Positions 38,909-64,000 of a stretch of 64,000 nt of DNA are shown here, piece by piece. The position numbers were made by a program, and so were the translations under genes. The stretch is from Klebsormidium nitens (taxonomy: Eukaryota; Plantae; Klebsormidiophyceae), in assembly GCA_000708835.1 (NCBI GenBank), contig DF236982.1, positions 62,001-126,000 on the forward strand. Direction: 5' to 3'. The notes beneath the pieces were generated by a model. It did not search any database. It was not told the DNA's origin and saw nothing but the letters and a program-made list of their open reading frames with translations. The first letter of the stretch is position 1; every line of letters begins with the position of its first letter.

Positions 38909-45549
<6,641 letters not shown>

Positions 45550-46969: not shown

Positions 46970-49900
46970 CTAGCCACCAAAGGTCATCGTGCCAGCCGTC
47001 CCCGCCAGGCTCCGCGCACGAGCAATCCCGCCACTAATTGCCCGTGAGACTTTCTCGGTGGCATCGTCGTCGTTTCCAAGGTACGTCCGGTTCTCCAGCG
47101 CCTCGACGATGGGCTCCCCTGCCGCCATCCCTAGTTTGCCGATCAGCGCGCCCTGGATCATGCTCCGGGTGCCGGGGAGGAGCTCCGACTCGGAACTGGT
47201 CGCCAAAAGGTGGGCCTGCTTCAAAAGCAACTGCGGCGACAAACGGGGAGTCAATCTTTGATTGCCGGGTCTGAGAGCGCCCCAAAATGGCGCTACACTA
47301 GTATCTGAAAATAGTTTAGATAGTAGTATGGATTAGAACCAATCGCCAGATCAGGGGCCTGATTTAGGGGAGCAGCGTTAACTGCGGCGACAAAAAAGAG
47401 AAAGGAATCTGATAAATTGGCCTTAGGAGTCAGCGGCCCCGAATGGGTTGCTTTGGTTTCGTGATGCGGGTCTGACTCGGAACTGGTCGCCAGAACGTGG
47501 GCCTGCTTCAGCAGCAACTGCGGCGACACGTGGAGAGTCGGCTTTTGTTCAGTGGTTTTAAAAGCGCCCGCGAAATGCGTCCTTTTTGTTTAAGATGTTC
47601 GTCTGAATTGGAACTGGTCGCCAGCACGTGGGCCTACTTCAGAAGCAACTGCGGCAACACAAAGAGAGACAAATCTAAAGAAGGCGGTTTGATCAGTGCC
47701 GTCGAAAGCAAAGATTTGGTTTCGTAAATATGGGTTGTCCGTAACCCAATGTCGGGCGACAAATTGGAATTAGTGCCAATGGTTGCCAGAGATAAGACCG
47801 GAATCTCGAGCAACCGAAAGCACCTGGCGTTGCGCAAAGCTGGCTTTCCCTTAAAACCAGAGTGACTCGCGTGAAGTCATCTCACAACCAACAAAGTGCC
47901 ATGCGAACAAGATGAATAGGTGGACAGTCGAGAGAACTTTGCTGCTTCGAGCGTCTACAAGGCATCCAGATCAAACGATAAGAACCCTTCAGCTTAACCC
48001 CCCCATCTGATGCGCGTACCTTTTCGATTAACGCGAGATGCAATTCAGGTTAACCCTTTATCCGTGTTTAACCAACTCAACATCCTGTCAGAAAAGCTCC
48101 TGCGTACCGGATTGATCTCGGGGTGGTTCTCCAGCTGCTGCAGGGCGCTCCGCTGGTCTTCGGTGAGGTCGGAATCGGAACCGGAACCGGTGTCGGGAGC
48201 GGAACGGGAACGCTCCACGCTCCGGGAGCCGCCGCCCAGGAAACCCGCGGCCGCGCTGCCGGCTTTGCCGATCGTCGACTCGTTCTTGACGCGATCGAAG
48301 CCCGCCTGATAAAATAGAAGCAGAGGACGGCTTCGCTTTGAGATGTCAGTCTACTTGAATACAAGACGAGATGCGTTTGCTGTGAATCACAAAAGCAGTG
48401 GTGCGTGCGTCCTTTTACCAAACAACGCCGCTATTTGCGATCCAGAACGGAAGATTTGCCACCTGCTAACCAAGGAAATCCTCTGTAAATACTGTAGTCA
48501 CGCCCATAGTGTTTCGCTATTCTTCGGGCTCAGACGTTCAGACAAGCACGTTCTGTAAGCCCAATCACCATGAGGGACCCGTCATATCCATCTCCAAACT
48601 GGACTGAAGAACCCAGATCGCTAACTCGAAGCCTCAGCTTGGATCATAGAAGAAAGATCCGAGATTCCATTGAGCACCTGCAGAGAGTCCTGCCACGTGG
48701 CACCGCTGTTGAACGCGTCGAGCGCTCCGTGGATCGCCTGCTTGGCGGCGTCCTTGGCGAGCGCCGTCCCGGTCTTGGCGGCCCAGCTGCCCGCCTTTCC
48801 GGCGGCCGTCTTCAGCATGTCCAGCAGGCCGCGGTCGCCGGAAAGCTGCGCCGCGGCCGCGAGCGCGCTCGGGGCGTCGTCGCCCGCGAGGTACGCCAAG
48901 CGCTGTAGAGGAGGAGGGGCGTGAGGTTAGTATGAGAGCGAGAGACAAGCTATTAAAACCGAAGGGACAGCAATCCTCACGAGGGAAAAACGTTCGTGTT
49001 CAGTCAGATGTGACGGTTCCACCACTTGTAGAGAAGGTTTGCAGATCCGAAGAGGCTTGGTCTGCTCCCAAAACCAACCTCGGGGCGAGAAGTGCAATTT
49101 CAAGTGGGCGGATTGGAGAAGGAGCTTGAGTTGACTCACTGATCAGAGTTGATATGCAATCTGCTTGCTATCAATCTGTTACTTTGATTCTTCAGCGAGC
49201 ACGTGCGCTCCGTCCAGTTCGCACTCTTCAGCAAGTGGCACGCCAGGGACCCGATCGATGAGTTTGCTGAAAGAAAGGAGGCTTTCGACATACCGCCAAA
49301 ATCCGGCTTCTAGTGTCGGCCATCGAAAACCTAACGAAACGAAAGATTGCAAATAATTCTTCAGCGGCCTCAAGAGCCTCGCCTGGTACGCCAGCCCGAT
49401 CTTGGCGTCGTCAGTTGTCCTCTGCAGTTCGGCGACCAGGGGGATCCCCCGGGGCCCGGCCACGGCAACTAGGTTGGCGAGCACGACGTTGCTCTCCGCA
49501 GCCTTGGCTTCGATGTCCCGGTTGCCGATCAGGCTGCCAACTAGGTTGAGGCCCGCCCCGGCGCCCCCCATGAGAGCGCCCGGTAGGCCGCCGCCCATAC
49601 CGCCCTGTAGGATCCCCATGCCGACGTTTGCGATCCCGCCGAAGATGTCGCCGAAAAGACCTGCAAACCGACGAAGAAAGGCGCGGTGACTTAGAACTAG
49701 GCGTGAGGAAAGAAGCAGACACCAAAACATGGCGCCGTTTGCGATCCCGCCGAAGATGTCGCCGAATAGACCTGCGACCGACAGAGATAGGAGGTGGTTA
49801 AGAACCAGGCTTGAGGAGGGGATTGATACGAAAAAAGGGTAGTGCATGGAAAAGTCGCCGGAAAGACCTGCGAACCGACGACGAAAGGGGGTGGTTCTGG

Positions 49901-52900
49901 AACTAGGCTTGAGGAGGGGTCCAAACGGACAAAGGGCTGCGCATGGAGAAGTCGAGGTGGAAACAGAAGCCCGTGGGAAGGAAAATAAAAAGCCTGTCGT
50001 CGGAAGAAAGAAGCAGGGACGAGAGCGGGAAATAAAGACGGAGAGGCCGTGGTTCGAAAAGAAGCCACAGTCGGACCCGCTACACAAGTCGAAGTATCTG
50101 CTGCTGAAAGAAAGCAAGCCGCAGAGGAATAGAGTCAGTGCAGACAAACTTGCGTGTAGATTTAGATCTCCATTTCAGATTCCTTAAGAATTCATACAGG
50201 TTATCATTGCTTCAAATGCCGAACGAGGGCGAAATACTTCTAAGTCCGCGAATTTCCCCGTCCAAGTTCCATCGACCCGCAAAGCACAGATCAAGCTGTG
50301 CTTCAACAAAGCAATTTGCAAATATACGACACTGCATGCACTGTTGACAGAACGGTGCAATCCCTATCGAATAGGCTTTAGGCAGACTGAATCTATGATA
50401 CAATGGGTCACGTGAATGAGGCTAGAACCAAACCCGTTTCCCCACCTCTGTCCCCGGTCGCGACCGCGGCCGCGTGCAGCCCCTCCACGCCGCCCAGCGC
50501 CGCGATCTGCGCGAGGGCCTCGTTTTTGGCGGCGTCGCGCACGGCGCCCCTCTCTTCCGCCAGGAACCGCACGATCTCCGCGCCAGCAGGGCCCACCGTC
50601 GCCAGCACGCGATCGACGGACGCCTTTCCGCCGGACGCCCAACTGATGCCGTCCGAAAGAGCGCCCAAACCAGCCTGCTGGAGCGTCGCGGTGACGTCAT
50701 CGGGGAGGCCCGCGCGCGAGCCGCGGGTTTGGGGTGGCAGCCCGAGGTCCGCCTGGGGATGAGGGGTCAGGATTTGGGTTTGATGCGGTTAGGAGCGGTT
50801 AGGAGTTGGTTAGGAGCGGTAAGTTTCAACACGGCTGGAGTGTGTTTGGGGCGCTGCGCGTTCGGGGCCAGCCCGAGGTTCGCCTGAGACTAGGAAAAGG
50901 AGAGTCCGAGAATTGGGTCAATGGGAGGGAAGGATGGCTTCAGGGCGGAAATGGACAGAGGGTTGAGAAAAGGTAGGGAAACTGTGTCAAGGGCCTCGAT
51001 CAAGTTACTTCGACGTGGAAGCCAAAAACAGCAAACAACGTCTTTCACAAGACAGCGCGCTAGCCTGGACGATGGGAATAAGGAGGAAAGGGACAGGAGC
51101 AGATGCAATCAGAACCTGAGTCAGGCAAACGTTCTGTGATGGAAAAGAGAATCAGGATGTTTACCAGAAATGGTGGTCTTCAAAAAGTCGTCTCGGTTGA
51201 AGGACGAGAAAGTTCCCGGCATTTGGGACAAACGAAGAGGAGTGGGGCGAACAACCAAAACGTCACGAAGACAGGGGACGCACTTTGAGTTTGTGACGGG
51301 CCGGGGATAAAAAGCCAAGACAGATAACGCTATTAGAAGGATTAGACCGTCGTTCGAACGAGAGCCAAAACGTATTGGAGTAGATCGAGAACGAAAGGTG
51401 AAGGTTCTATGAAAGGAGGGGACGCGTAGGAAAAGATCGAATTGAGCAGTCAAGAAGCAAAGAGACAGGGAGGGGTGAGCGCCGAGGGAGAGTACGTAGC
51501 TGGTATTTGATGCCATGACCATAAGGAAGCTCGGGAAAAAAGGCTGGCTTTGCGGAAACGTTGAAGCACTCGCACAAGTTTTCGGCGAGCTTTCACTGCG
51601 TTTTTGCTCCGCTTGGCAGCTTTGCCCGTGCTTTGCCCAGATTGTGGACTCCAATGTTGATTGGATAAAAAAGTCCGGTTGGACACGATACACTCAAAAA
51701 TGAATTGGGTAACAGTCCCCCTTCGAAGTACTCACCCCAATCGCGTTCTCGAGGTCGTGCAGGTTCTCGTCGACTGCCTGCATCTCGGGTTCGGCCGCCG
51801 CTACGTCGGCAACTAGAGCGACGCCTCCCAGCTGAGCCAGTCCCTGCGGTTGAACGAACGAATGTGATAAGCTGGAAAATCGACTGTTTTGCGGTTGGGA
51901 GAGATAGACATCGGACAACTAGATCGACGCCCCCCAGCTAAGACCAGCCTTTGCAGAACGAACGAATGTATTAAGCTGGAAAATCGACTATGCTGCAGTT
52001 GGGACAGGAAGACATCGGACAACTAGATCGACGCCCCGGCCCCCTGCTAAGAACAGCCTCCGCCAGAGGAAAGCCGAGTCTAGCCGTAACATTCTGAAGA
52101 GACACATTCTATGACTCGCACCTGGCTAAGCCCCCAGACGTCTTTTCATTCACTTAACTTCTTTGTGTCGAAGCCAAAGAGACTGTCAACTGGTCTGCAT
52201 TGACATTGCCACTCTTTGCAGGTCAAAGGCCTTGTAAGCGAAACACCATATCAACACAGCCTTTTGACCGCTCGTTGAGGGGCTGCCAGTTCAATCCAGA
52301 AGATCAAACCCTTCAGCAAAACCAGTTTCGGAGCATCACAAGTCTGAATGTCAGGGCTCGTTAGCTCTGATTGTCCAAATCTGGAGACCCCACCTCAAAG
52401 AGCAAGCTGATCCTGACTCTACGGTAAACCTAAGACTACAATCAGAATCGAAGTAAAAATGAGAAATGAAACTTAGGATGATGTAAATATAAAATCAAAA
52501 AGAATCAAAGCCAGAGCTCGCTAGGGTACCTGGGTGAGCGCGTCAAAGTCGGCCTGAGTGTTCAGACCAAAGGCAGCCGCAAGGGGCGAAATCAGGCCGC
52601 GAGTCGCACGGGGCCCAGTAGTACCATTGACTCTGGCAAGGTTGACGTCATCGCCGAGAAGAGATGCAGCAGCGTGCACCGCGTCTAGACCACCGATCGC
52701 TGCCAGCTGGCACACAGAGACGGAAAAGCAATGAGAAGGGGTCCCGAACTTGTGCATCACGACAGAGTGGCCAAGAGTGCACTGCAACAGAGTGGCGGTT
52801 AGACTTCTACAAATGTGGCAAAGGGATAGGGGCCCCCCATCTCTGGGGAGTTGCAACGAGCAAGCAACCTGCTTTGCAGTGTCAAAGCAAATGTGAATGA

Positions 52901-53543
52901 GACAAAGCACAAATGCAGCGGTGAGAGCTCTTAAAGAAGCCTTTGCAAGCCCTCTTACAGGGCTCCAACTCAAACCCATTAGCTCCTGACCTCAGCAGAC
53001 TGCGCCCTTGGGCAGATTCAATCAGCAGACTGAGCCCTTGGGCAGATTCGATCAGTGCAGGCATCTCACCCCTTTGTACAGATCATTGGTTTCCTTCTGG
53101 CTCCCAGATTTGCCCAATTTCGCCATCCTCGTAACAACCTCCAGGCCCCTTGCGCCAGATGCCGCCAGCAGCCGCGTCAGGTGCATTCGGGGCGCGTGAT
53201 CCAATGTGGGGCCGCCGCGTGTGGGGGCGCTTGAGAAGTCCCTTGCCGAGGTGGGGGGAGGACGTGCGGAGGGCTTGGAGGGAACGTAAGGGGGACGCTC
53301 AGGGCGACTGGGGTCTCTCGCGCCAACCTCCCGACTGCCACCTTCCCTTGTAGGGGGGTCTGCTGGCAGGTATTGGGGAGCCCATGCGCGCGCCCCCCTG
53401 GAAGACGATGTTGCGGCCCAGGGGGAGCGGTCGCTCTTGATTGAACGGGAAAAGGCGGTGGGATCAAACTCGCGGAAGAGGCTCCCGCTGTCGGTGAGGT
53501 CTCGGGGGCTCGACCTCCCGGGGGTGGACGCGTTGAACGCCAT
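46970..53543 (-). CDS. Uncharacterised ~675-aa Gly/Ala-rich helical-repeat protein
   Basis: Eight phase-consistent exons: 53543-53070, 52706-52530, 51843-51736, 50752-50446, 49660-49383 (GC donor), 48902-48678, 48305-48108, 47230-46970. About four internal repeats of LAxxGGxxxLxAAAxxxGD. I recognise no known family. Confidence 0.75.
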
Positions 53544-53888
53544 TGCTGGTGTGGAGCTCAGCGCAAGGAAAGTGGGCCGAATGCGGTGTTGAGATACGGG
53601 ACTCAGGATATAGGGACACGATGGTAGCTGGCGGCGGGTGTTTGGTCAATGCGATGCTTTGCTAGGGAGCTTTGTAGCGTCTGGGGCTGAGATGTAGGGA
53701 GTGGCAAGGTGGACTCTTATGCCATTGACAATTGCAGCTTGCAAACCGTTGTGGACAAACGTTTGCTTTCTAGAGCCAAAGAGCCAAGGGAAGGGGAAGC
53801 AAAGGCGGCTCCGATTGGCACTACCTGTTTGCCAATCTTGCCTTCAGCGACCGCAGCTTGTAAACCACTTTGAACTCTGAAGCATCAG

Positions 53889-54950
53889 GTACTTTCTCAG
53901 GTACATAATGCATCGCTCGAGTACGTTAGTCCTTCGATCGAACTTCGAAGCCAGCTCAGCTCTAGTGTGAGGTGAGTGTGGGCACTTTGAGACAGGAAGC
54001 CCTCGTCGAAGCTTGTACGGCCTAGCTGAAGCAGACTCCCTAGTAGTAGTAACAGGTACCTATGACAACCGTAAATGAGATTGCTCCTTTCATATCCTGG
54101 TACGGTGTACCTACCACCAAAAACGGGGACCCACCGTTGGAGCACCAGACTCAGTACATACCTTATACGGTGTTCAACTGTAACCCGCAGCACTTACTGC
54201 GGCTCCAACGGTGTCACAAGGATGGTAGGATTGCAACCATGAAATGGATGCAATCCTGGATATTAAACCCAAACTTCAAAGTTCAGCCCTTGTGTACCTA
54301 TTCTATGCTCAGCCAATCCGTGCAGAGGAGATGACTCCGCACCTGACAGTGCTACTACCGTATGTACCGTCCTGACTCCCGACTCCTCAAAAACCTACAC
54401 AAAGTTGAAAGTATCCATCATGCACGTCAGCCGCCGAACGTCGCGCCGCATGCCTCGAATCGCGATGTTTGCGCACGCGGCCCTGCGGATAACAGTGGCC
54501 GTCATCCGGGATTTCAGGTGATTAAAAGTATGTGCCGTACAGGTTGCGCCGTTAAAACGCAAACCTCAGTCTTGCCGTCGATGGGCTCTGAAAGTTCTTA
54601 CTCGCCGTCCAATCTCAAGAGTACGATTATTAGTCGAACAGGCACACGCGGCTTCGGTCGACGGTCGACCATCGTGGTCACAAAGATGACGACATGTCGT
54701 ACGGTCTCGAACGTACAACAACGGTACGGGTTCGAATAGGTACTGTACCAAGTAATACCAACTACCTGAATACGGTACTAGCCCGGGCCCCGCAGTGCGC
54801 ACCGCGCTGCCGCGTAGCCTCCACTCTACTCACTGTACTCAGGTACCTAGCTAGGTAGGTAGTACCAATGAGTTTGTGTTTCGGGCTCCGCCAATCGAAG
54901 TCGTGACTGTGACGATTGCATGTCAGGCTACCACGCCCGTTTTGTACTTC
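53889..54950. promoter_or_regulatory. GTAC-dense, palindrome-rich block in the divergent interval between the helical-repeat gene and the metacaspase
   Basis: About 22 GTAC in ~1.06 kb (hand count, ~4 expected). 12-bp inverted repeat 54132-54143/54202-54213 and 14-bp palindrome tacctagctaggta at 54844-54857. Confidence 0.35.
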
Positions 54951-55221
54951 GCGTTATCTTTTGTCAAAAAGTATGTATTGTATATGTAGTGTCGAAACCC
55001 CCCTCCCCCGACGTAACGCCAACCATATAACAGATAGTATGCATACTCGACTGGCACGTTCAGACTGCGTAACGTCCTAGGGCGACCCGAAACCAGTCTG
55101 CGGCCCTTCAACAGACTGCCGAAGATAACGCGATAGAGTGACTTCTGTTACACAGTGTACACAAGAAGAGCGTACATGGTGTACTCTTGACACGTGGCCT
55201 GACTCTAGGAAAAATGCGAAA

Positions 55222-55298
55222 TGCTCTCTAGTGGGATTTGAACCGTCGACCCTCTGCTCTCATATCCAACGCTCCTACCATTTCGGCCAATAACAAAC
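55222..55298 (-). pseudogene. Decayed tRNA-like sequence (tRNA pseudogene or tRNA-derived SINE head)
   Basis: Minus strand has A-box-like TGGCCGAAATGG, B-box GGTTCAAATCC, a 3' acceptor-like arm TAGAGAGCA and a downstream TTTTT. Acceptor, anticodon and T stems carry mismatches, so no isotype can be assigned. Confidence 0.6.
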
Positions 55299-56564
55299 CA
55301 ACTCACAAAAGGTCAATCACAAAATATACACACAATACAAGAAGCCACGAGAGCAGATTGAAACCGTCGATAGACATCGACGGTTCACGCCGCTCAAGGG
55401 TTCACCTAATGCATTCTCCGACTGCAAAACGTACGCGTAATCCGCGTACATGTGCAGTACTCCATAATCTTGCGAAATGTACAGACTTGATGTGTAAATG
55501 CGCCCTTTGGAGCCAAATCTCTCCCTCCTTTCAGTCAGCCCCGCCTCTTATCTTAGTCTGCCCTCTTATCTTCCCTTATCTGCCTATTCCCACTTTTCTC
55601 GCCTCTCCGTTCTCCCGGCGTTTGGAGTAGGGGCCTGTGTGGCCGCGCTGGCATGTACGGCAGGTGGGTATTCTGCAGGTAGTACCTAGTACCCTTTCTG
55701 AGGAGAGCTATAGCCTATAGGTATATAGGCTCCGCCAGCAACACTCCGAAGCAGGGGTCGGCATATAATATTGACGGGGTCGGCTTGAAGCCGGGTACTC
55801 TGGCTTCCAGTTGGATTATCAATTGTTATCGGCCATTTCTCCCGGCTTCAACCCCGCCCTCTCCAGGTATGGGTCGGCTTTTCAGCCGGGTACTTGTCGT
55901 TGCCGTCGGCTTTTGGAATTTCCACCCCGCTTCGGCCGGCTTTTGCCGCATGCGACTCCTGGGACTGCAATGGCAAGGGTCCCAATCCAGTCACTCTGGA
56001 GTCTGGATCAAGCCGCTTTGGTACTGAGAGTAAGCTTCACATACCTACCTAGCAGCTTCTGACAGACTGTACTTACTTCTCTGTCGTTTGCAAACTGGTC
56101 ACCCTTGTCCTGCATTCGTGCCTAGGTAGCACCGTGCACCCACCTAGGCACGTCAGTCAGGATACCATGAGATGCTGTGGCGGCCGGACAAGTGTGAAGA
56201 GCCGAAGTGTTGCTATTTACAATGGTTCACCGTACAGATAGTAACTCGAAGACGACAGCAACTGCATAATGCAGATGAGTTCAACACTCTCTGCAGTGTT
56301 CACACGGGGACCAAGGATGATGGCATGCTTCAGCTTGGCAGCTGCTAGTCGCCAACCGTGTCTTTATGGCTTCCTTCTTCAGTGATCGCCAAAGTTGACC
56401 CTGCTAAACAGGACCTTCGTACAAACCTCAAATCCTTCCTTTCTCCAGCTAGCGGCTTCTGACAGCTAAATACCTAGCAGCATACTCCCTCCAGGCGAAA
56501 TGTTTCCTTGACAAAAGCCCCCTTCCTATTTCCCCCCCTCCCACTGTCGCCCCCTGCTGACGTC

Positions 56565-59500
56565 ATGCCAGGTCTCATCTCAGCTCGCAGCATTGGGTCG
56601 CGCGACCTGGCGGCGTCCGTCAATGGCACAGACGGATTGGGTGAGGGCCTGGACAAGCTCGGAGCAAAATACAGGGGCCGGCGCCGGGCCCTCCTTGTGG
56701 CTGTGAACTACGTACAATCTGACCGTGGGGTGCCGCGCCTCTATGGGTGCACGAAGGACGTGGAGTTGGCGCGTGAGCTGCTGACGAGTGTGTATGGCTT
56801 TGAGGAAAGCGACATTATGGTGAGCACCATGGATGTCTGCTCTTATCCAGGGGAAGCTGTGGCGTGTGTAAGAAAGATGAAGGTCAAGAATCTTGAGCTG
56901 GTGCAACGGCAGCAAACACTATTCTCGAGTCTGAAGACTGATTCCATCAAAGTTGGCGGCGGCGTCGCCCAATATCCTAGCAAGTGTTTGGTATTGAAGA
57001 GGAGCCTGAGGGCTGAGGGATCCTTGTTGTGAGTGCTTGCATTGGCCTGGCTGCTGGCAATGAGCAGCCAATTACGAGCTCAAAAGCTAGCTCAAAATGC
57101 CATGCCTGTAAGTCTTGGGGGTTGCAGGCTGCTGAATTGAGGGTTCTGCAAATGCATTGAGGCTCCCTAAAGGAAGCCAGTGAAGACCAGCAGATGGCAC
57201 TTAGTGCAGTCTGGCCTGCAGTATGGAGCTGCACTCCAGCTCGCTGGAGACTTGTCGAGGCTTGCAGCACTGTTTATCCTGGTTCTAGGGTATTTTCACC
57301 CATGAACACAAAGAAGGAGTGGTTTACATTCAAAGCTAGTCTGAGCATAAATAGATGCAGTCTCACCACATTGTCCTGTTTGAAGGATGCTCAGCTGGGT
57401 GTTGGAAGGAGCACCGTTCTCAGCAATGAGTGCAGCTCAAAACGCTGGTGAAGCAGTCAAGCAGTGCTTTGAAGATACAAACGTGTGTTACCTCCTGTAA
57501 CGCTGCAGGTGTTGGCAGATGCGGGCCCCTTCTCGCGGCCGCATGCGCTGCCAACAAAAACCAACATAGTGCAGTACCTGAACCAGCTCGTTGAAGAGAG
57601 CGAGGAAGGTGACACTGCATACTTCCACTATAGGTGAGTTCTCGACCAGAAGATGGGAATGTGAAGAGGGGAGGATAAGGGCCCTGAGCTCGTGAGAGAC
57701 ACATAAGAAGGAAGCCACAGGAGAGCAATCCTGCTTGAAAATGGATGGAACTTCCAGGCGAACAGTTGACTGTAATCATACTTATAGAAGCTCCATTGGG
57801 AAGTTGCTTGCTATCACAATTGGTGCACCCAGGTTCTGCAGATTACAGCACCTGTGCAAAAGAAGAGTCTCATTGATACAAGGCTGCTATTGTCGTGCAT
57901 TTCCATCCCACGGTGTCAAAGCAGGGGTTATGACTTCGCCGTTTTAATGGTATATGTGCAACATTGTCTGTGCCTCAAATGTGTGGTGATGTTGCAACCG
58001 TTTGGCTTGGCTGACTTCAACTTGCACCCTGTGGTATTTTTGCTCTCAGATTCTGACACAGCTTTTTTTCTCCGGATCTGCAGTGGCCATGGCGCTCAGG
58101 TAGGGCCTCTTACCTACAAACATTTCACTTGGAACGAAACCGCAGTCACCATGTTGATATGCATGCAAGCATTAGGCATGCATCCGTGCTAACTGCATGT
58201 GACATCTGATGCTGTGCGAGTTAGCCTGGTCTCCTTGCTTCACAAGAGAAAGGTTTGTATGGATTCTCAAACCACGCAGGTTCCTTTACTCTTATTAGCA
58301 ATGGACCTGCCAGCATTCTTTTCGCCAAGTAGTGTTCCAGCTTAAATTTGCTCGCATTGACGACTCTGCTTGGACACAACCAGATTCCTGAGCGGATCAT
58401 ACAAAGCCTGTCAAAATCTCGGTTCCAAAGTTCAAAGCCTCAGCAGTCAGCATTCAGGCATTTTTCAAGTTGCTTCTCTTGCAAGCGTCTTAATCTGACT
58501 GGTAGCTCCTTTTGGTCCAGCATTATTGGCCACAGCAGCAGCACAGCCTTGACAGTTGTGTTGCAGATTGAAGAGTCTTCGAGCAATCCACTTTGATCTG
58601 ACGCAGGAAGCTTGTCTTTTGCAGCTTCAGCGAGAGCACAACCTTCAGACCTAGATTTTGCAGCATTTGAATAAACCCGCAACTTATTGTGATGCAGGCT
58701 CCAGACTCAACCGGCAAAGAATGGGACGGGCTGATGGAGGTCCTGTGCCCTTCGGACATGACGGTGTCCGGACCGGACGGCTTCGACAACTACATCGGAC
58801 AGGAGGAGTTCAAGGACCTCATTCTCAACTTCCGCCGGGGGGTGTGGGGTGTGGTCGTTCTAGACTGCTGCCACTCAGGGGACGACTCTCCGGGTAACTC
58901 GCTGCTCTCTTTGTCGACAGATGTCTTGTTTTTTTTTTGCCCGGTTGTCTGAGTCTTGCTCAGCAAAGAATCACTGGCTACGTATCAGCATGTGAAGCGT
59001 TGCCTTTAGTCTGGTCTCAAAGCTGGGAAAAGGGACACCTGATGTGAGGTTTGGAGTGTCAGAAGGACTTGCAGAGCTCCGTGTCTCGTTGTGAAAAGGT
59101 GTTGGACATAAAAGGGGAATATAAAGATATACGAAAGGATGACAGATTGGTTTAAAAGAACAACGGTGCTTGTCTCTCCTGCCTTTGCTTCGTGTCACTT
59201 GCAAGGTCTCTGCAACTCTATCTATGCATTCTCTGCACCTGTCCTGGCCTTTAGGTTGCAGCATAGAAGAATGCTCCAAACGTTAGCTTCGCTTCCATGT
59301 GGCCAGCCGTCCAATGTTTCCGATCATCTTGATGTTGTTGCCTGTCCGGGCCGCGATCTAAACGACGTCATCCAAACTGCTCTAAGGCTGAACTCGAAGC
59401 GTACTCGTTCGCCTCCAGGTTCCGGTTCCGGTCATCGCGGGCTTCCGGAGGAGTCCGAAGACTCCCCGCCCTTCCGCAACCGGAAAATCAACTTCATGTC

Positions 59501-62500
59501 TCCAAGCGAGCAGGGAGGCTTGACCCGTGGCCCTGACGCCCCTTTTGGATCCAACTCCCAATCGGCGGGCCTTCTAGACGCGCCGGGCGACGTCGCTGAG
59601 ATTCCGGTCATGTGGTCCGCTTGCGGGTGAGACCAGTACGGACTTTGCAGAACCTTGCAACGTTGGTAAAACCTGTTTCTGAATGCAGAATCAGGACTGT
59701 GTGGTAAGTTGGTTTGAGAGGAACCGCTATCTGCGTGATGCGAGCCGTTCCAAATGTGCTTTCTGCTTTCGTCATCGTCCCACTTGCCTCGGCATCCAAT
59801 ACTGTAACGCCCAACCCATCAATGGCGCACCCAGAGCTGTTTACCTTTCCACTTGCATCGGGGTGTGTTGATTCACATTTTGAGAGCAGTCGGAGAAACA
59901 TCCATTTGTAGCACACCGCAAGCAATCAGTTGGATTCTAGACAACTTAAGAGGCCCAACTTGTAACAGGACAAATACTTGCCTTGAACGGGTGTGGTTAA
60001 TAAGTTGATTTTGATGGGCACCAATGCGGAGCAGGCACTTTTCTGGGGTTGCCTTCTGAGTTCGAACTTCTTTCTCATTATCACTTGAGCTTGTATGATT
60101 ATCATCGAGACTCATTAAAAATCACCCCCCTGGCAGGGAGTCTCAGACGAGCGCCGACGCGAACATCAACGGCGGCCCCGTGGGAGCGTTCAGCCACTTC
60201 TTCTACGGGACGCTCCTCGCTGCCGGGGGGGACACCGCCCGCCTCTCTGACGTCATGAATGCCGTCAAGGGGGGCCTGAAGAAGGGCCGGTTCACACAAC
60301 GCCCCATCTTCAAACTGAAACACGGAAGTGGTCGGGAGGTCCTACCGCTCGTCCCCCCCCCGGGAGGAAGCTTCACCCGGCGCGCTCTCCCGCGTGTCCT
60401 GTCAACGGCGAACCCGAGCACGGTGACGTCACGTCGTGACGACAGCCCCTTGGGAGAGGTGGACACGACGGCGGTGGTGCGCAAGCTCGAGGCGCAGAGC
60501 GGGTTGGCGCCCGAGGACTTGCAGGTTTTGGAAAATCCACCGAACGGAAAACGTCGGGAGCCGATACTGGAGTGGAAGACAGGTGTGGCGCCGCCAGGGG
60601 CCAGTGGAGAAAAGGACGCCCCGCCAGGGGCGGCGCTTGACTGGGACGCCTCTCAGGTACGCTCGCGTTGCTCTCGCAGATTTTAAGGCTCTAATCTCAA
60701 CCATCACAACACGCCTGCCCCGACCCGTACCGAGCGAGCGCTGAAACTGGAAGTGTCTCAGGCGGAACAGTTGACCAGAAGCAATTGAATACACGTCAGC
60801 GACGAATGATGCTCCCTGTACAAACGCTGATTCCAACATTTGTCTCAGAAGTTTGCACTCGGGCAATATGATGGTCCAGTACACTTTGCTGGACCAGAGA
60901 GCTCCTTCATCGGAAGCGATTCTCCTGCCCCGTAGGGCATCTTATCGTTAAACATGTCCGGTTCGAGAAGCAGAGAAGCGGTTTCCATCTTCTCAGCAAA
61001 AAGGATCTACGCACAACCAAACCAATATTCGGAACGTTCTTCCAGATCTACGCTCGGGCGCTCGCGGCCGGAGGGTTTAAGGGTTTAAGGGCGGCCGCCC
61101 AGCTGGCGGGCGACGCGGCTCTGCTCGAGATCCTCAGCCGGGGGGCCTTTCGACGGCTGTCAACGGACACCGTCCGCGACCCCGCCAGCGCGGACTTCAC
61201 GCCGCGGGGGGTCCCTGTAGACCTGCTGGAGACCCCCCCGGGAGACGGCATGGCGGCGGAGCGGGTCAGCGCATATCTGCAGGTGAGAGGGGCGCCCTTT
61301 CCGGGCCGTTTGCCAAAATGCCTAGCTTCGAAAGATTCTTAGATGTTCTCGAGAAAGAGTGGGCGTGTTCCAAGATGAACGTGAGGATATGGTTTAGGAG
61401 ATCACAGAAGGAGTTAGCGTTTCCAGTAATTTGCTGGCTATTGTCGGCCTTGGATTCACAAACAACCGGTTGGAGGATATTCACTTCGAGAAATCTTTCA
61501 ATTCTGCATACAACATCTGGCCATTCTGATCCGGCCAGAACTTTTTCATTCCTGATCAGTTCTGCACAGCAGTATACAAACAATCGACGTTCGCAGAGGT
61601 GATGTGCTTTTTGCCTCCCCACATGGAAGCTGTCTCTAATTTTTCTCCCTCACGCTTCGTTTCAACAGAGAGTGCTCGCCGCGGTCCCCGGCGCAAGCGG
61701 CTCCCTCGACCAGGCACGTGCCGTCCTCTGGGAAGAACTTCGCCGTCTCGGGGGGGAGGCCTGCGTGGCTGCCGGCACTCCTGCGCTCGACACCCCCGCC
61801 AAAGACTCGCCCGACATCAACTCCACTTACGCTGCGATCTACTCACTGATCGCCCCGCTAAACAACCCCATGCTAGTTCGTTCCGCTCTGGGCGTTGTTA
61901 CGGGGCTCGCATACGACCTCGACTTCTGGGACGCGTATGACGCCGCGACAGCGGGGAGACCGCCGCCCGCGGACGTTCCGGCGGAGATCCGGCCGGTCGG
62001 GTCAGCGAACGACGGAAGGGGCGACGGTACGGCGGCCGGATCGCCGACCGGTTTTGCGAACGGATCCGTCGACGGAAACGCTTTGGCGACCAGAATGACC
62101 GCCGGAAGGAAGATTACCAACCCGCCCCCGTTTCTCGCCTGGGACGAGGAACTGGGTGCGAAGGTGGCGGCGTATAATGACTTCGTCGCTAAGTATGCTG
62201 GGTGAGGCTTCGTTCTAGACACCCCGTACTGCATAGATAGACTGATTGATCTTCCTTTCGAGCGTTGTTGCCTTTCCAATCGCTACTGTTAGAGATTCGA
62301 GTTTCGGTACCGTCCACGTGTTGGACTTTAAAATAACGCGACTGTCATAGCTCCACCACTCGCGCTTTCTCTTCCATATGCTCTCGGTTGATGCCCTTCA
62401 AGTCCACGGTGAAAACAAGTTCACTCCTTGACGCCCCGCTGAGAATTGATTGAAATCCCCAGTTATGTCTTCTACAGCTCAGAAGCAAACTGATTGGACA

Positions 62501-64000
62501 GTCAGCCCCTGACAGATTTTGACTGTAACAACCCCTTTTCCGAGTCCGAGCATCAGGTTGAAAAGAGTCTCTCGAGCATCAGTACGGGTATGCTGCAGAG
62601 ACAAAAAGTTTTAAAACTATTTTTTGCCCAACCGCGTTCTTTGAGCTCACCATGACTCACGTCGTCACCACTTTAAGCTGACAATTGCGGTCGTTTGTGT
62701 TCCCAGTGAGATCGACGAAGACGCCGCCCGCCGTTCTCTCGTTGCCTCCCTGATCGCCGAGAAAGGCGGCGCGGGGCTCTGGTTCGGCGAGATCATGGGC
62801 CGCACCGCCGTCCCCCCCTGGGAACCTTCCACGGGGACCGACCAGATGCGCACGCTGGGTTCTAACGTGGGAACCCCCGTCGTAGGACTGGTCGGAGAAC
62901 ACCCCCGGGAGAAACAACTGCTGGGGACGATGCTCGCGCTCACCGGGAGCATCCAGGGCGTGCAGGTCGGTTGACCGTTCCATTCTCCGTTGCGGTTTTT
63001 CCTTTGCGGCATGAGGTCGGACAGATTGCTGATTTTGTCGTCTGCCTGTTCGTTTGCGTTGGGTTTTGTTGAGTGGAAAGATTCCTCTTGCGAGTAGAGA
63101 CTGCTGCCATCGATGGGAATACACGGGCGGTGGGAAAGGTCGAACAAGACAACGTACGCTCAGGCAACAGATCCAAGAATGTATGGTCGACCGAAAATGT
63201 TGATCTTCGTACTGTTGGAGAAGCAACCGCGGAGTATCTTCGTAGCCGCTTTGAGGTGTGCATCAGAGCCGTCAAATGCAATAATCAGCTCCCACATCAA
63301 CCTCGCGTCGAAACAGCTGCTACTTGTTTCTGCAACGCTCCGGTTAACCTCCGCGGACTGTTTCGGAAGCTTTCAGGCGCTTCGTAGCTCTCCCAAGAAG
63401 ATTGACAGCTTGAGAAGCGGCCCTCGACTCTCAAAACCTTCCAAGCATTTCTATCGAGTTATTTTGATCTGGATTCTGCCGCCATCCTAATGCGTGTATT
63501 AGATGCTTCCTCTTCGTCAAAATGAGGATCAGCATCCTTTCTCGACCCTGAACTTCCTTGACCCGTCGTCCCCCCACAGGTGGGCCTGGACATCGCCCAC
63601 GCCGCCCGCTTGGGGTCCCTCACCGAGCCCGACCGCCAGCGGCATTTCGGTTCGCTCCTGGCCCTCTGCCGGCCCGAGGCAAGCTCCCGGGAGCTGCTGT
63701 CCGCCACGTGGCAGCTCATTGGCCTTGAGGTCTTCCTTCGGACGCCCGGAGGCGCGTCCGGCAGCTCCCCCCACCGCTGGAACGGCGACACCGTGGCGGG
63801 GCTGGTCGCGTACGTGAGCGCCGCGTCCGGAAATTCGGACGCGGGGGACGCGGCGTCCGAGCTCGTCCGGGCGACGATCAGACGGGACGAAGAAGACGAG
63901 TCTGCGCTGGCGGCGGACTTGTACGGACTGGCGGGGCCGCTCGGGTGGGAGGTCGCGCAGCAGATTGGCGCGCTGTCGGTTGGCACGCGGGGGGGGTCGG
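56565..64000 (+). CDS. Atypical metacaspase (peptidase C14B) with a C-terminal extension of at least ~590 aa; 3' end lies outside the window
   Basis: Exons 56565-56819, 57509-57633, 58084-58099, 58698-58893, 59419-59626, 60137-60656, 61046-61282, 61669-62201, 62707-62965, 63580->64000; all junction phases match. Motifs: RALLVAVNY, LYGCTKDV, YFHYSGHG (catalytic His), EVLCPSD, LDCCHSG (catalytic Cys), SACGESQTSAD, GAFSHFF. An upstream exon is possible because the ATG sits in acceptor-like context. Confidence 0.88.

Follow-up and report, generated by a model that had tools for sequence, protein, structure and literature searches.

The stretch of DNA analysed here (bases 62001-126000 of scaffold DF236982.1 of the alga Klebsormidium nitens; 64,000 nucleotides, in the following referred to as the window) carries two divergently transcribed genes. 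One encodes a giant metacaspase and the other (KFL_000330160, below called the partner gene) encodes a repeat protein for which database comparison revealed no homologue outside Klebsormidium. We read the two as a Klebsormidium-restricted gene pair that was inherited and duplicated as a unit, and give this explanation as a whole, a true kinship of the helical element on both proteins included, a probability of about 0.5. Beyond a few cases in plants and yeast, little is known of what metacaspases cut and what regulates them, and we know of no described partner for an algal metacaspase. A protease gene that has stayed linked to a single orphan gene during a duplication and a separation of species provides a concrete candidate for such a partner in an early-diverging relative of the land plants. 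The arrangement of the pair is as follows:

46970..53543, minus strand: partner gene KFL_000330160 (GAQ79570.1); revised model of eight exons and 675 amino acids (aa), coding sequence open
53070-53543, 52530-52706, 51736-51843 and 50446-50752, minus strand: partner exons 1-4 of the revised model
49383-49660, 48678-48902, 48108-48305 and 46970-47230 (stop codon included), minus strand: partner exons 5-8 of the revised model
53544..56564, no strand: divergent intergenic region, 3,021 bp between both start codons, unalignable with the other two copies
56565..64000, plus strand: metacaspase gene, annotated product of 1911 aa, extending past the window end (annotated range and Peptidase_C14 match)
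56565-56819, 57509-57633, 58084-58099, 58698-58893 and 59419-59626, plus strand: metacaspase exons 1-5
60137-60656, 61046-61282, 61669-62201, 62707-62965 and 63580-64000+, plus strand: metacaspase exons 6-10 (in the window)

The start codons, at 53543 (minus strand) and 56565 (plus strand), lie head to head and the genes face apart. An earlier note, made from the DNA letters alone, had proposed outward-facing start codons some 3 kb apart, in agreement with the measured distance of 3,021 bp, and every peptide quoted in that note was found where it had been placed.

The same arrangement was encountered twice more. A query with a metacaspase tail exon identified a 70%-identical open reading frame (ORF) on a 105-kb JGI metagenome contig, and the neighbourhood of this ORF contains both genes exon by exon, in the same head-to-head order and with unalignable introns. 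A paralogous module is located about 82 kb off on the K. nitens scaffold itself (DF236982.1 181150-208555), inverted relative to the module of the window. There, a paralogous partner gene (KFL_000330240; 645 aa, 76% identical to the revised 675-aa partner) is found head to head with a gene that encodes a 1923-aa Peptidase_C14 protein. The spacers of these other two copies measure about 2.5 kb and 1.3 kb. Beyond the partner, the two K. nitens copies have different neighbours (a protein kinase in the window, FAD_binding_3 at the paralogous locus), and therefore the duplicated unit ends at the partner.

Comparison of the three copies revealed clear constraint. Exon DNA is 73-92% identical among them and introns and spacers are unalignable, while the ratio of non-synonymous to synonymous substitution rates (dN/dS) lies between 0.2 and 0.7 for every metacaspase exon, the tail included, and between 0.2 and 0.6 for every partner exon. 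The order of pairwise identity is the same for both genes: it is highest between the second K. nitens copy and the metagenome copy, intermediate between the two K. nitens copies and lowest between the window copy and the metagenome copy, i.e. for both genes the metagenome copy is nearest to the second K. nitens copy. The linkage in relatives that the earlier note had anticipated was thus recovered in three head-to-head copies, with purifying selection on both genes. Judged from these comparisons, both genes are real and constrained, and travel together as a unit.

Within the partner gene, the synonymous divergence between the K. nitens copies is uneven, at 0.18-0.24 in exons 4-6 (48678-50752) and 0.75-1.0 in exons 1-3 (51736-53543). 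Such a contrast suggests that in the 3' half of the gene the paralogues underwent gene conversion or that codons are strongly constrained there.

The partner gene required a revised model. A query with a partner exon retrieved, from a library of representative proteins, a 726-aa protein (P0002) that is 99% identical and corresponds to GAQ79570.1 / KFL_000330160. In the revised model six introns have GT-AG borders and intron 5 has GC-AG borders: the donor after LAYQ (49381-49382, minus strand) reads GC, where the metagenome copy has GT. The public model skips the GC donor and continues to the next GT, which adds 14 residues (P0002 residues 486-499), and a second annotated insertion after GDRG (P0002 residues 357-393) derives from a duplicated acceptor region. 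Both extra stretches are probably intronic, and the true protein would consequently count about 675 rather than 726 aa. The exon joins that had been proposed earlier (a slash marks the junction) all turned out to have proper splice sites. NDLYKG/LAAIGG is flanked by donor AAAGGG/GTGAGA and acceptor CCAG/CTGGCA, ALTQ/GLAQLGG by donor CAG/GTACCC and acceptor CGCAG/GGACTG, and LAYQ/RLAYLAG by the GC donor and the acceptor CTACAG/CGCTTG. Every partner exon is conserved in the other two copies.

The encoded protein is rich in Ala (16%), Gly (14%) and Leu (11.5%). The earlier description of the partner as protease-less was correct in that no protease domain was found, and comparison with Pfam, NCBIfam and PADLOC yielded nothing beyond sub-threshold, chance-level matches. 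The look-alikes in the ESM Atlas all scored under chance level. Among 1.84 billion representative proteins, a query with the exon that contains one motif recovered the partner itself and an exon-sized JGI metagenome ORF, and no other homologue. Two further metagenome scans for relatives were blank, and word-index searches returned the paralogue and the metagenome copy and nothing else. Taken together, these searches establish the partner as a protein without homologue outside Klebsormidium, as far as the databases covered can tell. A match to a 4392-aa bacterial adhesin (P0004; JGI; 'VCBS repeat', Ig/cadherin; E=1e-9 with a 93-aa query) was rejected as an artefact in which nine near-identical matches of 8.6 bits had been summed.

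The partner consists of three units of about 60 aa, each formed by an a-half (consensus h-L-A-x-x-G-x-x-G-x-x-I/V-V-x-x-L-A) and a b-half (consensus ..L/I-A-x-L-G-G-x-x-x-h-x-A-A-A-x-x-x-G-D), plus one degenerate b-like copy. In the order of the protein, the repeats and the glycine-rich stretch between them are:

53121..53186, minus strand: repeat unit U1, a-half (MHLTRLLAASGARGLEVVTRMA), from the nine-unit alignment
52647..52706, minus strand: repeat unit U1, b-half (LAAIGGLDAVHAAASLLGDD), with its opening residues TNDLYKG in exon 1 (53070-53090)
51781..51843, minus strand: R2, a lone and degenerate b-like copy (GLAQLGGVALVADVAAAEPEM), conserved at the other two loci
50446..50620, minus strand: repeat unit U2, both halves within one exon, ending in GDRG, from the alignment and the AlphaFold2 hairpin
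49515..49660, minus strand: glycine-zipper-like stretch of about 48 aa (GDR/GLFGDIFGG...SLIGNR/D), flanked by two conserved Arg
49383..49490, minus strand: repeat unit U3, a-half followed by the first residues of the b-half (NVVLANLVAVAGPRGIPLVAELQ...IGLAYQ), from the unit alignment
48813..48902, minus strand: repeat unit U3, b-half (RLAYLAGDDAPSALAAAAQLSGDRGLLDML), from motif and HMM matches

On basis of a nine-row alignment, AlphaFold2 predicted a single unit to be a helical hairpin (predicted local distance difference test, pLDDT, of 83) with helices spanning residues 2-22 and 29-55 and a third one that is short. A Foldseek comparison of this repeat-unit model with the PDB gave a best match of E=3.8. 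A lead towards ankyrin repeats (LH.AA..G...LL..GA) was dropped: no Ank family matched at E<=1, and the repeats recur about every 60 aa, not every 33, and have two long helices. The glycine-zipper-like stretch directly follows U2 and is bounded by GDR/G and GNR/D. Its Kyte-Doolittle hydropathy is about 1.0-1.2, i.e. under the level of a classical membrane helix. Such a helix was sought in the whole partner and none was found, the highest 19-residue hydropathy being 1.56, and neither the stretch nor the partner matched the gasdermin or Gly-zipper families of Pfam.

The protease itself has the catalytic core of a metacaspase. The 10-exon in-window model has GT-AG borders at all introns and is open for 923 codons. 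Peptidase_C14 (PF00656) is the sole Pfam family on the annotated 1911-aa product and is found on the 1923-aa paralogue as well; exon 1 alone reaches 16.8 bits against a cut-off of 21.4 bits. The catalytic dyad is intact (SGHG at residue 127, DCCHSG at residue 188, counted in the 10-exon model) and is distributed over two exons:

58084..58099, plus strand: micro-exon of 16 nucleotides with the catalytic His (S-GHGAQ), with a CTGCAG acceptor and a GTAGGG donor
58698..58893, plus strand: exon with the catalytic Cys (DCCHSGD), from the model and exon conservation

The letters of the micro-exon are T GGC CAT GGC GCT CAG, and the surrounding 35 nucleotides are 94% identical in the paralogue. The p20 core begins about 35 residues from the N-terminus, without a prodomain, and is followed, after a linker of about 70 aa, by the p10 part, which holds QTSAD. 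Behind p10 extends a tail of about 1500 aa, in which no known domain was detected (Pfam, NCBIfam and PADLOC, applied to the tail exons and the metagenome copy). The final stretch of the tail, some 900 residues viewed in the metagenome copy only, contains no further copy of the motif described below and no Pfam domain. The assignment of exon 61046-61282 to the metacaspase tail, already made in the earlier note, could be confirmed: the exon has a CAG acceptor and a GTGAGA donor, is in phase with the caspase domain and joins in frame after ...DWDASQ.

It is this tail exon that connects the two proteins in sequence. Its opening part resembles the b-half of the partner repeats:

61046..61141, plus strand: b-like motif in the tail of the metacaspase (IYARALAAGGFKGLRAAAQLAGDAALLEILSR), model residues 441-472

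The identity of 11/18 positions that had been counted between GLRAAAQLAGDAALLEIL and ALAAAAQLSGDRGLLDML is correct. The pattern AAA.{2,4}GD occurs four times in the six-frame translation of the 64 kb, and all four occurrences fall in this locus. A hidden Markov model (HMM) of the b-half, trained on partner copies only (K. nitens and the metagenome copy), was compared with the 2083 six-frame ORFs of the window; the metacaspase exon ranked directly after the three training copies (14.4 bits, E=0.003), and the next ORF had an E of 0.17. The same model placed the metacaspase exon first at the paralogous locus (15.2 bits, E=0.0016) and at the metagenome locus (12.6 bits, E=0.01). When the spliced metacaspase was shuffled, either uniformly or window-wise, none of 1000 shuffles in each case attained the real score, and with an HMM of the whole 60-aa unit at most 1 in 1000 did. 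The nine-row alignment, which combines the partner units with the three metacaspases, has G, AAA and GD in every row, the tail element carrying all six invariant positions of the partner repeats. Moreover, the tail motif is almost invariant across the three metacaspase copies, and its exon is among the two best-conserved exons of the tail.

The strongest competitor to a meaningful relation, to which we give somewhat less than even odds, is coincidence: the pair would be real and conserved, and the motif a chance likeness between amphipathic helices rich in Ala, Gly and Leu, so that the genes may be functionally unrelated. The results with the partner-only HMM, which puts the tail exon first among some 2000 six-frame ORFs at each of the three loci, and with the shuffles speak against coincidence, as does the fact that the matching positions are exactly the invariant repeat columns and are kept nearly unchanged in three metacaspases. 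Nevertheless, a considerable number of observations weigh in its favour and against a link between the proteins. The best pair of three-sequence profiles reached only P=0.048 in hhalign, with a probability of about 1%. The match spans some 30 residues, i.e. half a repeat unit, in two proteins that are both Ala/Gly-rich; the b-half alone matches, and no a-half is found beside the tail motif. The position of the intron relative to the motif differs by 4-5 codons between both genes. An HMM of the full-length partner scored 0-4.4 bits on the metacaspases (empirical p 0.003-0.05), and a long collinear alignment gave p ~0.03 for the metagenome pair and p ~0.9 for the paralogous pair once the motif was removed. 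The full-length AlphaFold2 model of the partner, although all-helical, had a pLDDT of 35; it was unusable and was left out of the fold search. Many windows had been scanned and this finding was picked out post hoc, the three loci do not count as independent evidence, and we estimate that about one chance match this strong between adjacent genes is to be expected per whole-genome scan. Furthermore, adjacency after joint duplication is expected anyway and is no proof of cooperation. Finally, none of the RNA contigs of four runs touches the partner (47700-53650), which is not proof of silence.

The attempts to extend the similarity likewise count on the side of coincidence. A second shared block, proposed earlier as VLATVGPAGAEIVRFL versus LYGLAGPLGWEVAQQI, did not hold, with a score of -2.8 bits for the unit HMM. 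The a-half was also compared with LYGLAGPLGWEV as a candidate second block and rejected, the best result being marginal (E ~0.1) and confined to one locus. That the tail might be homologous to the partner over a long stretch was considered and abandoned as well: the Smith-Waterman score of 112 versus 57+-9 (p ~1e-4) applies to the window copy only.

With respect to the idea that the two proteins share a helical repeat, the element is indeed predicted to be helical and could not be placed in a named family (Pfam, NCBIfam, PADLOC, Foldseek), but the metacaspase holds half a repeat and there is no shared domain. The profile-profile comparison that the earlier note had named as a refuting test was not significant (hhalign P=0.05), while the shuffles show that the similarity exceeds composition. 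Because of the post hoc selection, and the single chance match of this kind expected genome-wide, we consider the odds about even that the tail element is a true relative of the partner b-helix, which would have arisen most simply via an old local duplication between neighbours. Should the likeness be coincidental, what is left is an ordinary lineage-specific gene pair, together with corrections to two gene models.

Among the mechanisms, docking seems the likeliest to us, although we regard it as doubtful when taken as a whole. Both genes would be expressed together from the spacer between them, and the single b-helix in the tail of the protease would pack on the hairpins of the partner and so recruit the partner as substrate or regulator of the Arg/Lys-specific protease. 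A physical link between both proteins is in that sense a lead and not a result.

A somewhat less probable reading is that the tail helix and the partner repeats are relics of an old local duplication or exon transfer that now serve as structural helices without contact. The genes adjoin, the partner has clearly expanded by internal duplication, the locus still has small local duplications of exon starts, and the motif statistics apply to this reading in the same way as to docking, from which it is indistinguishable by sequence alone. On the other hand, there is no common intron position, no trace at the DNA level and no similarity beyond the motif.

We consider it unlikely that protease and partner are related as enzyme and precursor, with the metacaspase cutting the partner at GDR/G (the ends of U2 and U3) and at NR/D and thereby freeing the 48-aa segment as a membrane-active fragment. 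This reading overlaps with docking, to which the shared helix would at most be an aid, and in its logic it is akin to pore formers activated by a protease. In each of the three copies the b-helix of U2 and that of U3 are followed by GDRG, and the Gly-rich segment is bordered exactly by a conserved Arg on either side, is highly conserved, shows GxxxG-type spacing and is devoid of Arg and Lys in both K. nitens copies; the metagenome copy, however, has a Lys within it. In addition, an Arg/Lys-free run of 48 is about as expected (~41, as estimated from size and composition), the hydropathy of the segment is under membrane-helix level and no glycine-zipper or gasdermin family matched, although bacterial caspase-like proteases are known to occur beside pore-forming substrates (10.1101/2021.06.07.447441). 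The boldest variant, a streptophyte-algal cell-death or defence module in which the lone helix completes or competes with the hairpins, the partner is cut after GDR and a glycine-zipper fragment attacks membranes, appears very improbable to us.

Some further features of the locus were noted. Three families of direct repeats (70-94% identical) at 47145-47668, 49617-49775 and 51852-52037 each repeat, within the intron directly upstream, the acceptor region and opening codons of a partner exon (exons 8, 5 and 3, respectively). Compared with the paralogous locus, every repeat copy aligns to one single place, and the extra copies seem specific to the window locus; they may serve as alternative acceptors or be decaying duplicates. 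Some 150 nucleotides before metacaspase exon 2 (57356-57508) show DNA-level conservation with both other copies and lie outside the best splice model; they may represent an alternative exon or an element conserved within the intron. Past the 3' end of the partner, and outside the duplicated unit, the plus strand carries a gene annotated as a 1058-aa protein kinase (38909-45549; Pkinase / PK_Tyr_Ser-Thr). No Rfam family matched within the window, and sampled words from it are almost absent from all 24 listed RNA runs.

Metacaspases are divided into type I, with an N-terminal prodomain, type II, with a long linker between p20 and p10, and type III, in which p10 precedes p20. The K. nitens protein shares with them SGHG and DCCHSGD in p20, QTSAD in p10 and the match to Peptidase_C14. 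Nevertheless, it falls into none of the three types, since a prodomain is lacking, the linker measures about 70 aa and p20 precedes p10.

The association of a protease with a helical partner calls to mind the caspases of animals, which are recruited via homotypic helical Death-fold domains (CARD, DED, DD, PYD), six-helix bundles of about 90 aa. The likeness consists in a protease of the caspase superfamily that, as proposed here, would be recruited by a helical element it has in common with its partner. However, the K. nitens unit is predicted to be a two-helix hairpin of which the protease holds one helix, and neither the partner nor any of the exons matched a Death-fold family of Pfam at E<=1. 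The head-to-head NLR pairs of plants consist of two divergent NB-ARC/LRR genes, whereas the K. nitens pair matched neither NB-ARC nor LRR domains.

In bacteria and fungi, gasdermins adjoin caspase-like or subtilisin-like proteases (10.1101/2021.06.07.447441). Here too, a protease of the caspase superfamily is found beside a non-enzymatic, possible substrate with a candidate membrane-active part. Unlike the gasdermins, the partner is predicted to be all-helical and has no gasdermin family match, and cleavage and pore formation would be purely conjectural. In the pairs with amyloid signalling motifs (HET-S/NWD2, HRAM, PP, sigma, bacterial BASS), adjacent genes share a motif of 20-30 aa (PMC5485727; 10.1101/2020.01.06.895854), which, like the K. 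nitens motif, is single in one protein and repeated in the other. The amyloid motifs are beta-forming and terminal and link an NLR to a membrane-targeting effector, whereas the K. nitens motif is predicted to be helical and is internal; neither of the two genes gave a NACHT or NB-ARC domain match.

A described analogue is formed by the effector-associated domains (EAD1-11) and the bacterial Death-like domains of prokaryotic conflict systems, and the claim of the earlier note that no equivalent had been described was therefore wrong (PMC7159879, PMC8195603). These domains are small, mostly helical and duplicated between a core protein and the effector encoded by an adjacent gene, caspase-like peptidases included, and a homotypic coupling of core and effector has been proposed (PMC7159879, PMC8195603). 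The two cases would have in common a small, helical, non-enzymatic element on the products of both neighbours, one of which may be caspase-like, in lineage-specific copies and with a proposed role in homotypic coupling. The EADs, however, are whole multi-helix domains with solid profile support, encoded in operons together with an NTPase, vWA or GTPase core, whereas the K. nitens pair is eukaryotic, intron-rich and divergently transcribed, and shares one half-repeat helix with borderline statistics. No EAD or Death family and no NTPase, vWA-MoxR or GTPase core matched in Pfam, NCBIfam or PADLOC, Peptidase_C14 being the only match. When sharing of the EAD type was tested, a b-helix-like element was found on both neighbours, at the length of half a unit, with E=0.003 in the window and P=0.05 in hhalign. 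If the shared helix docks, the coupling principle of the Death-fold and effector-associated domains would extend to the plant lineage by way of unrelated parts. In the same way the cell-death module, if true, would represent a eukaryotic counterpart of both EAD-type coupling and the protease-activated pore formers, built from parts without homologues elsewhere.

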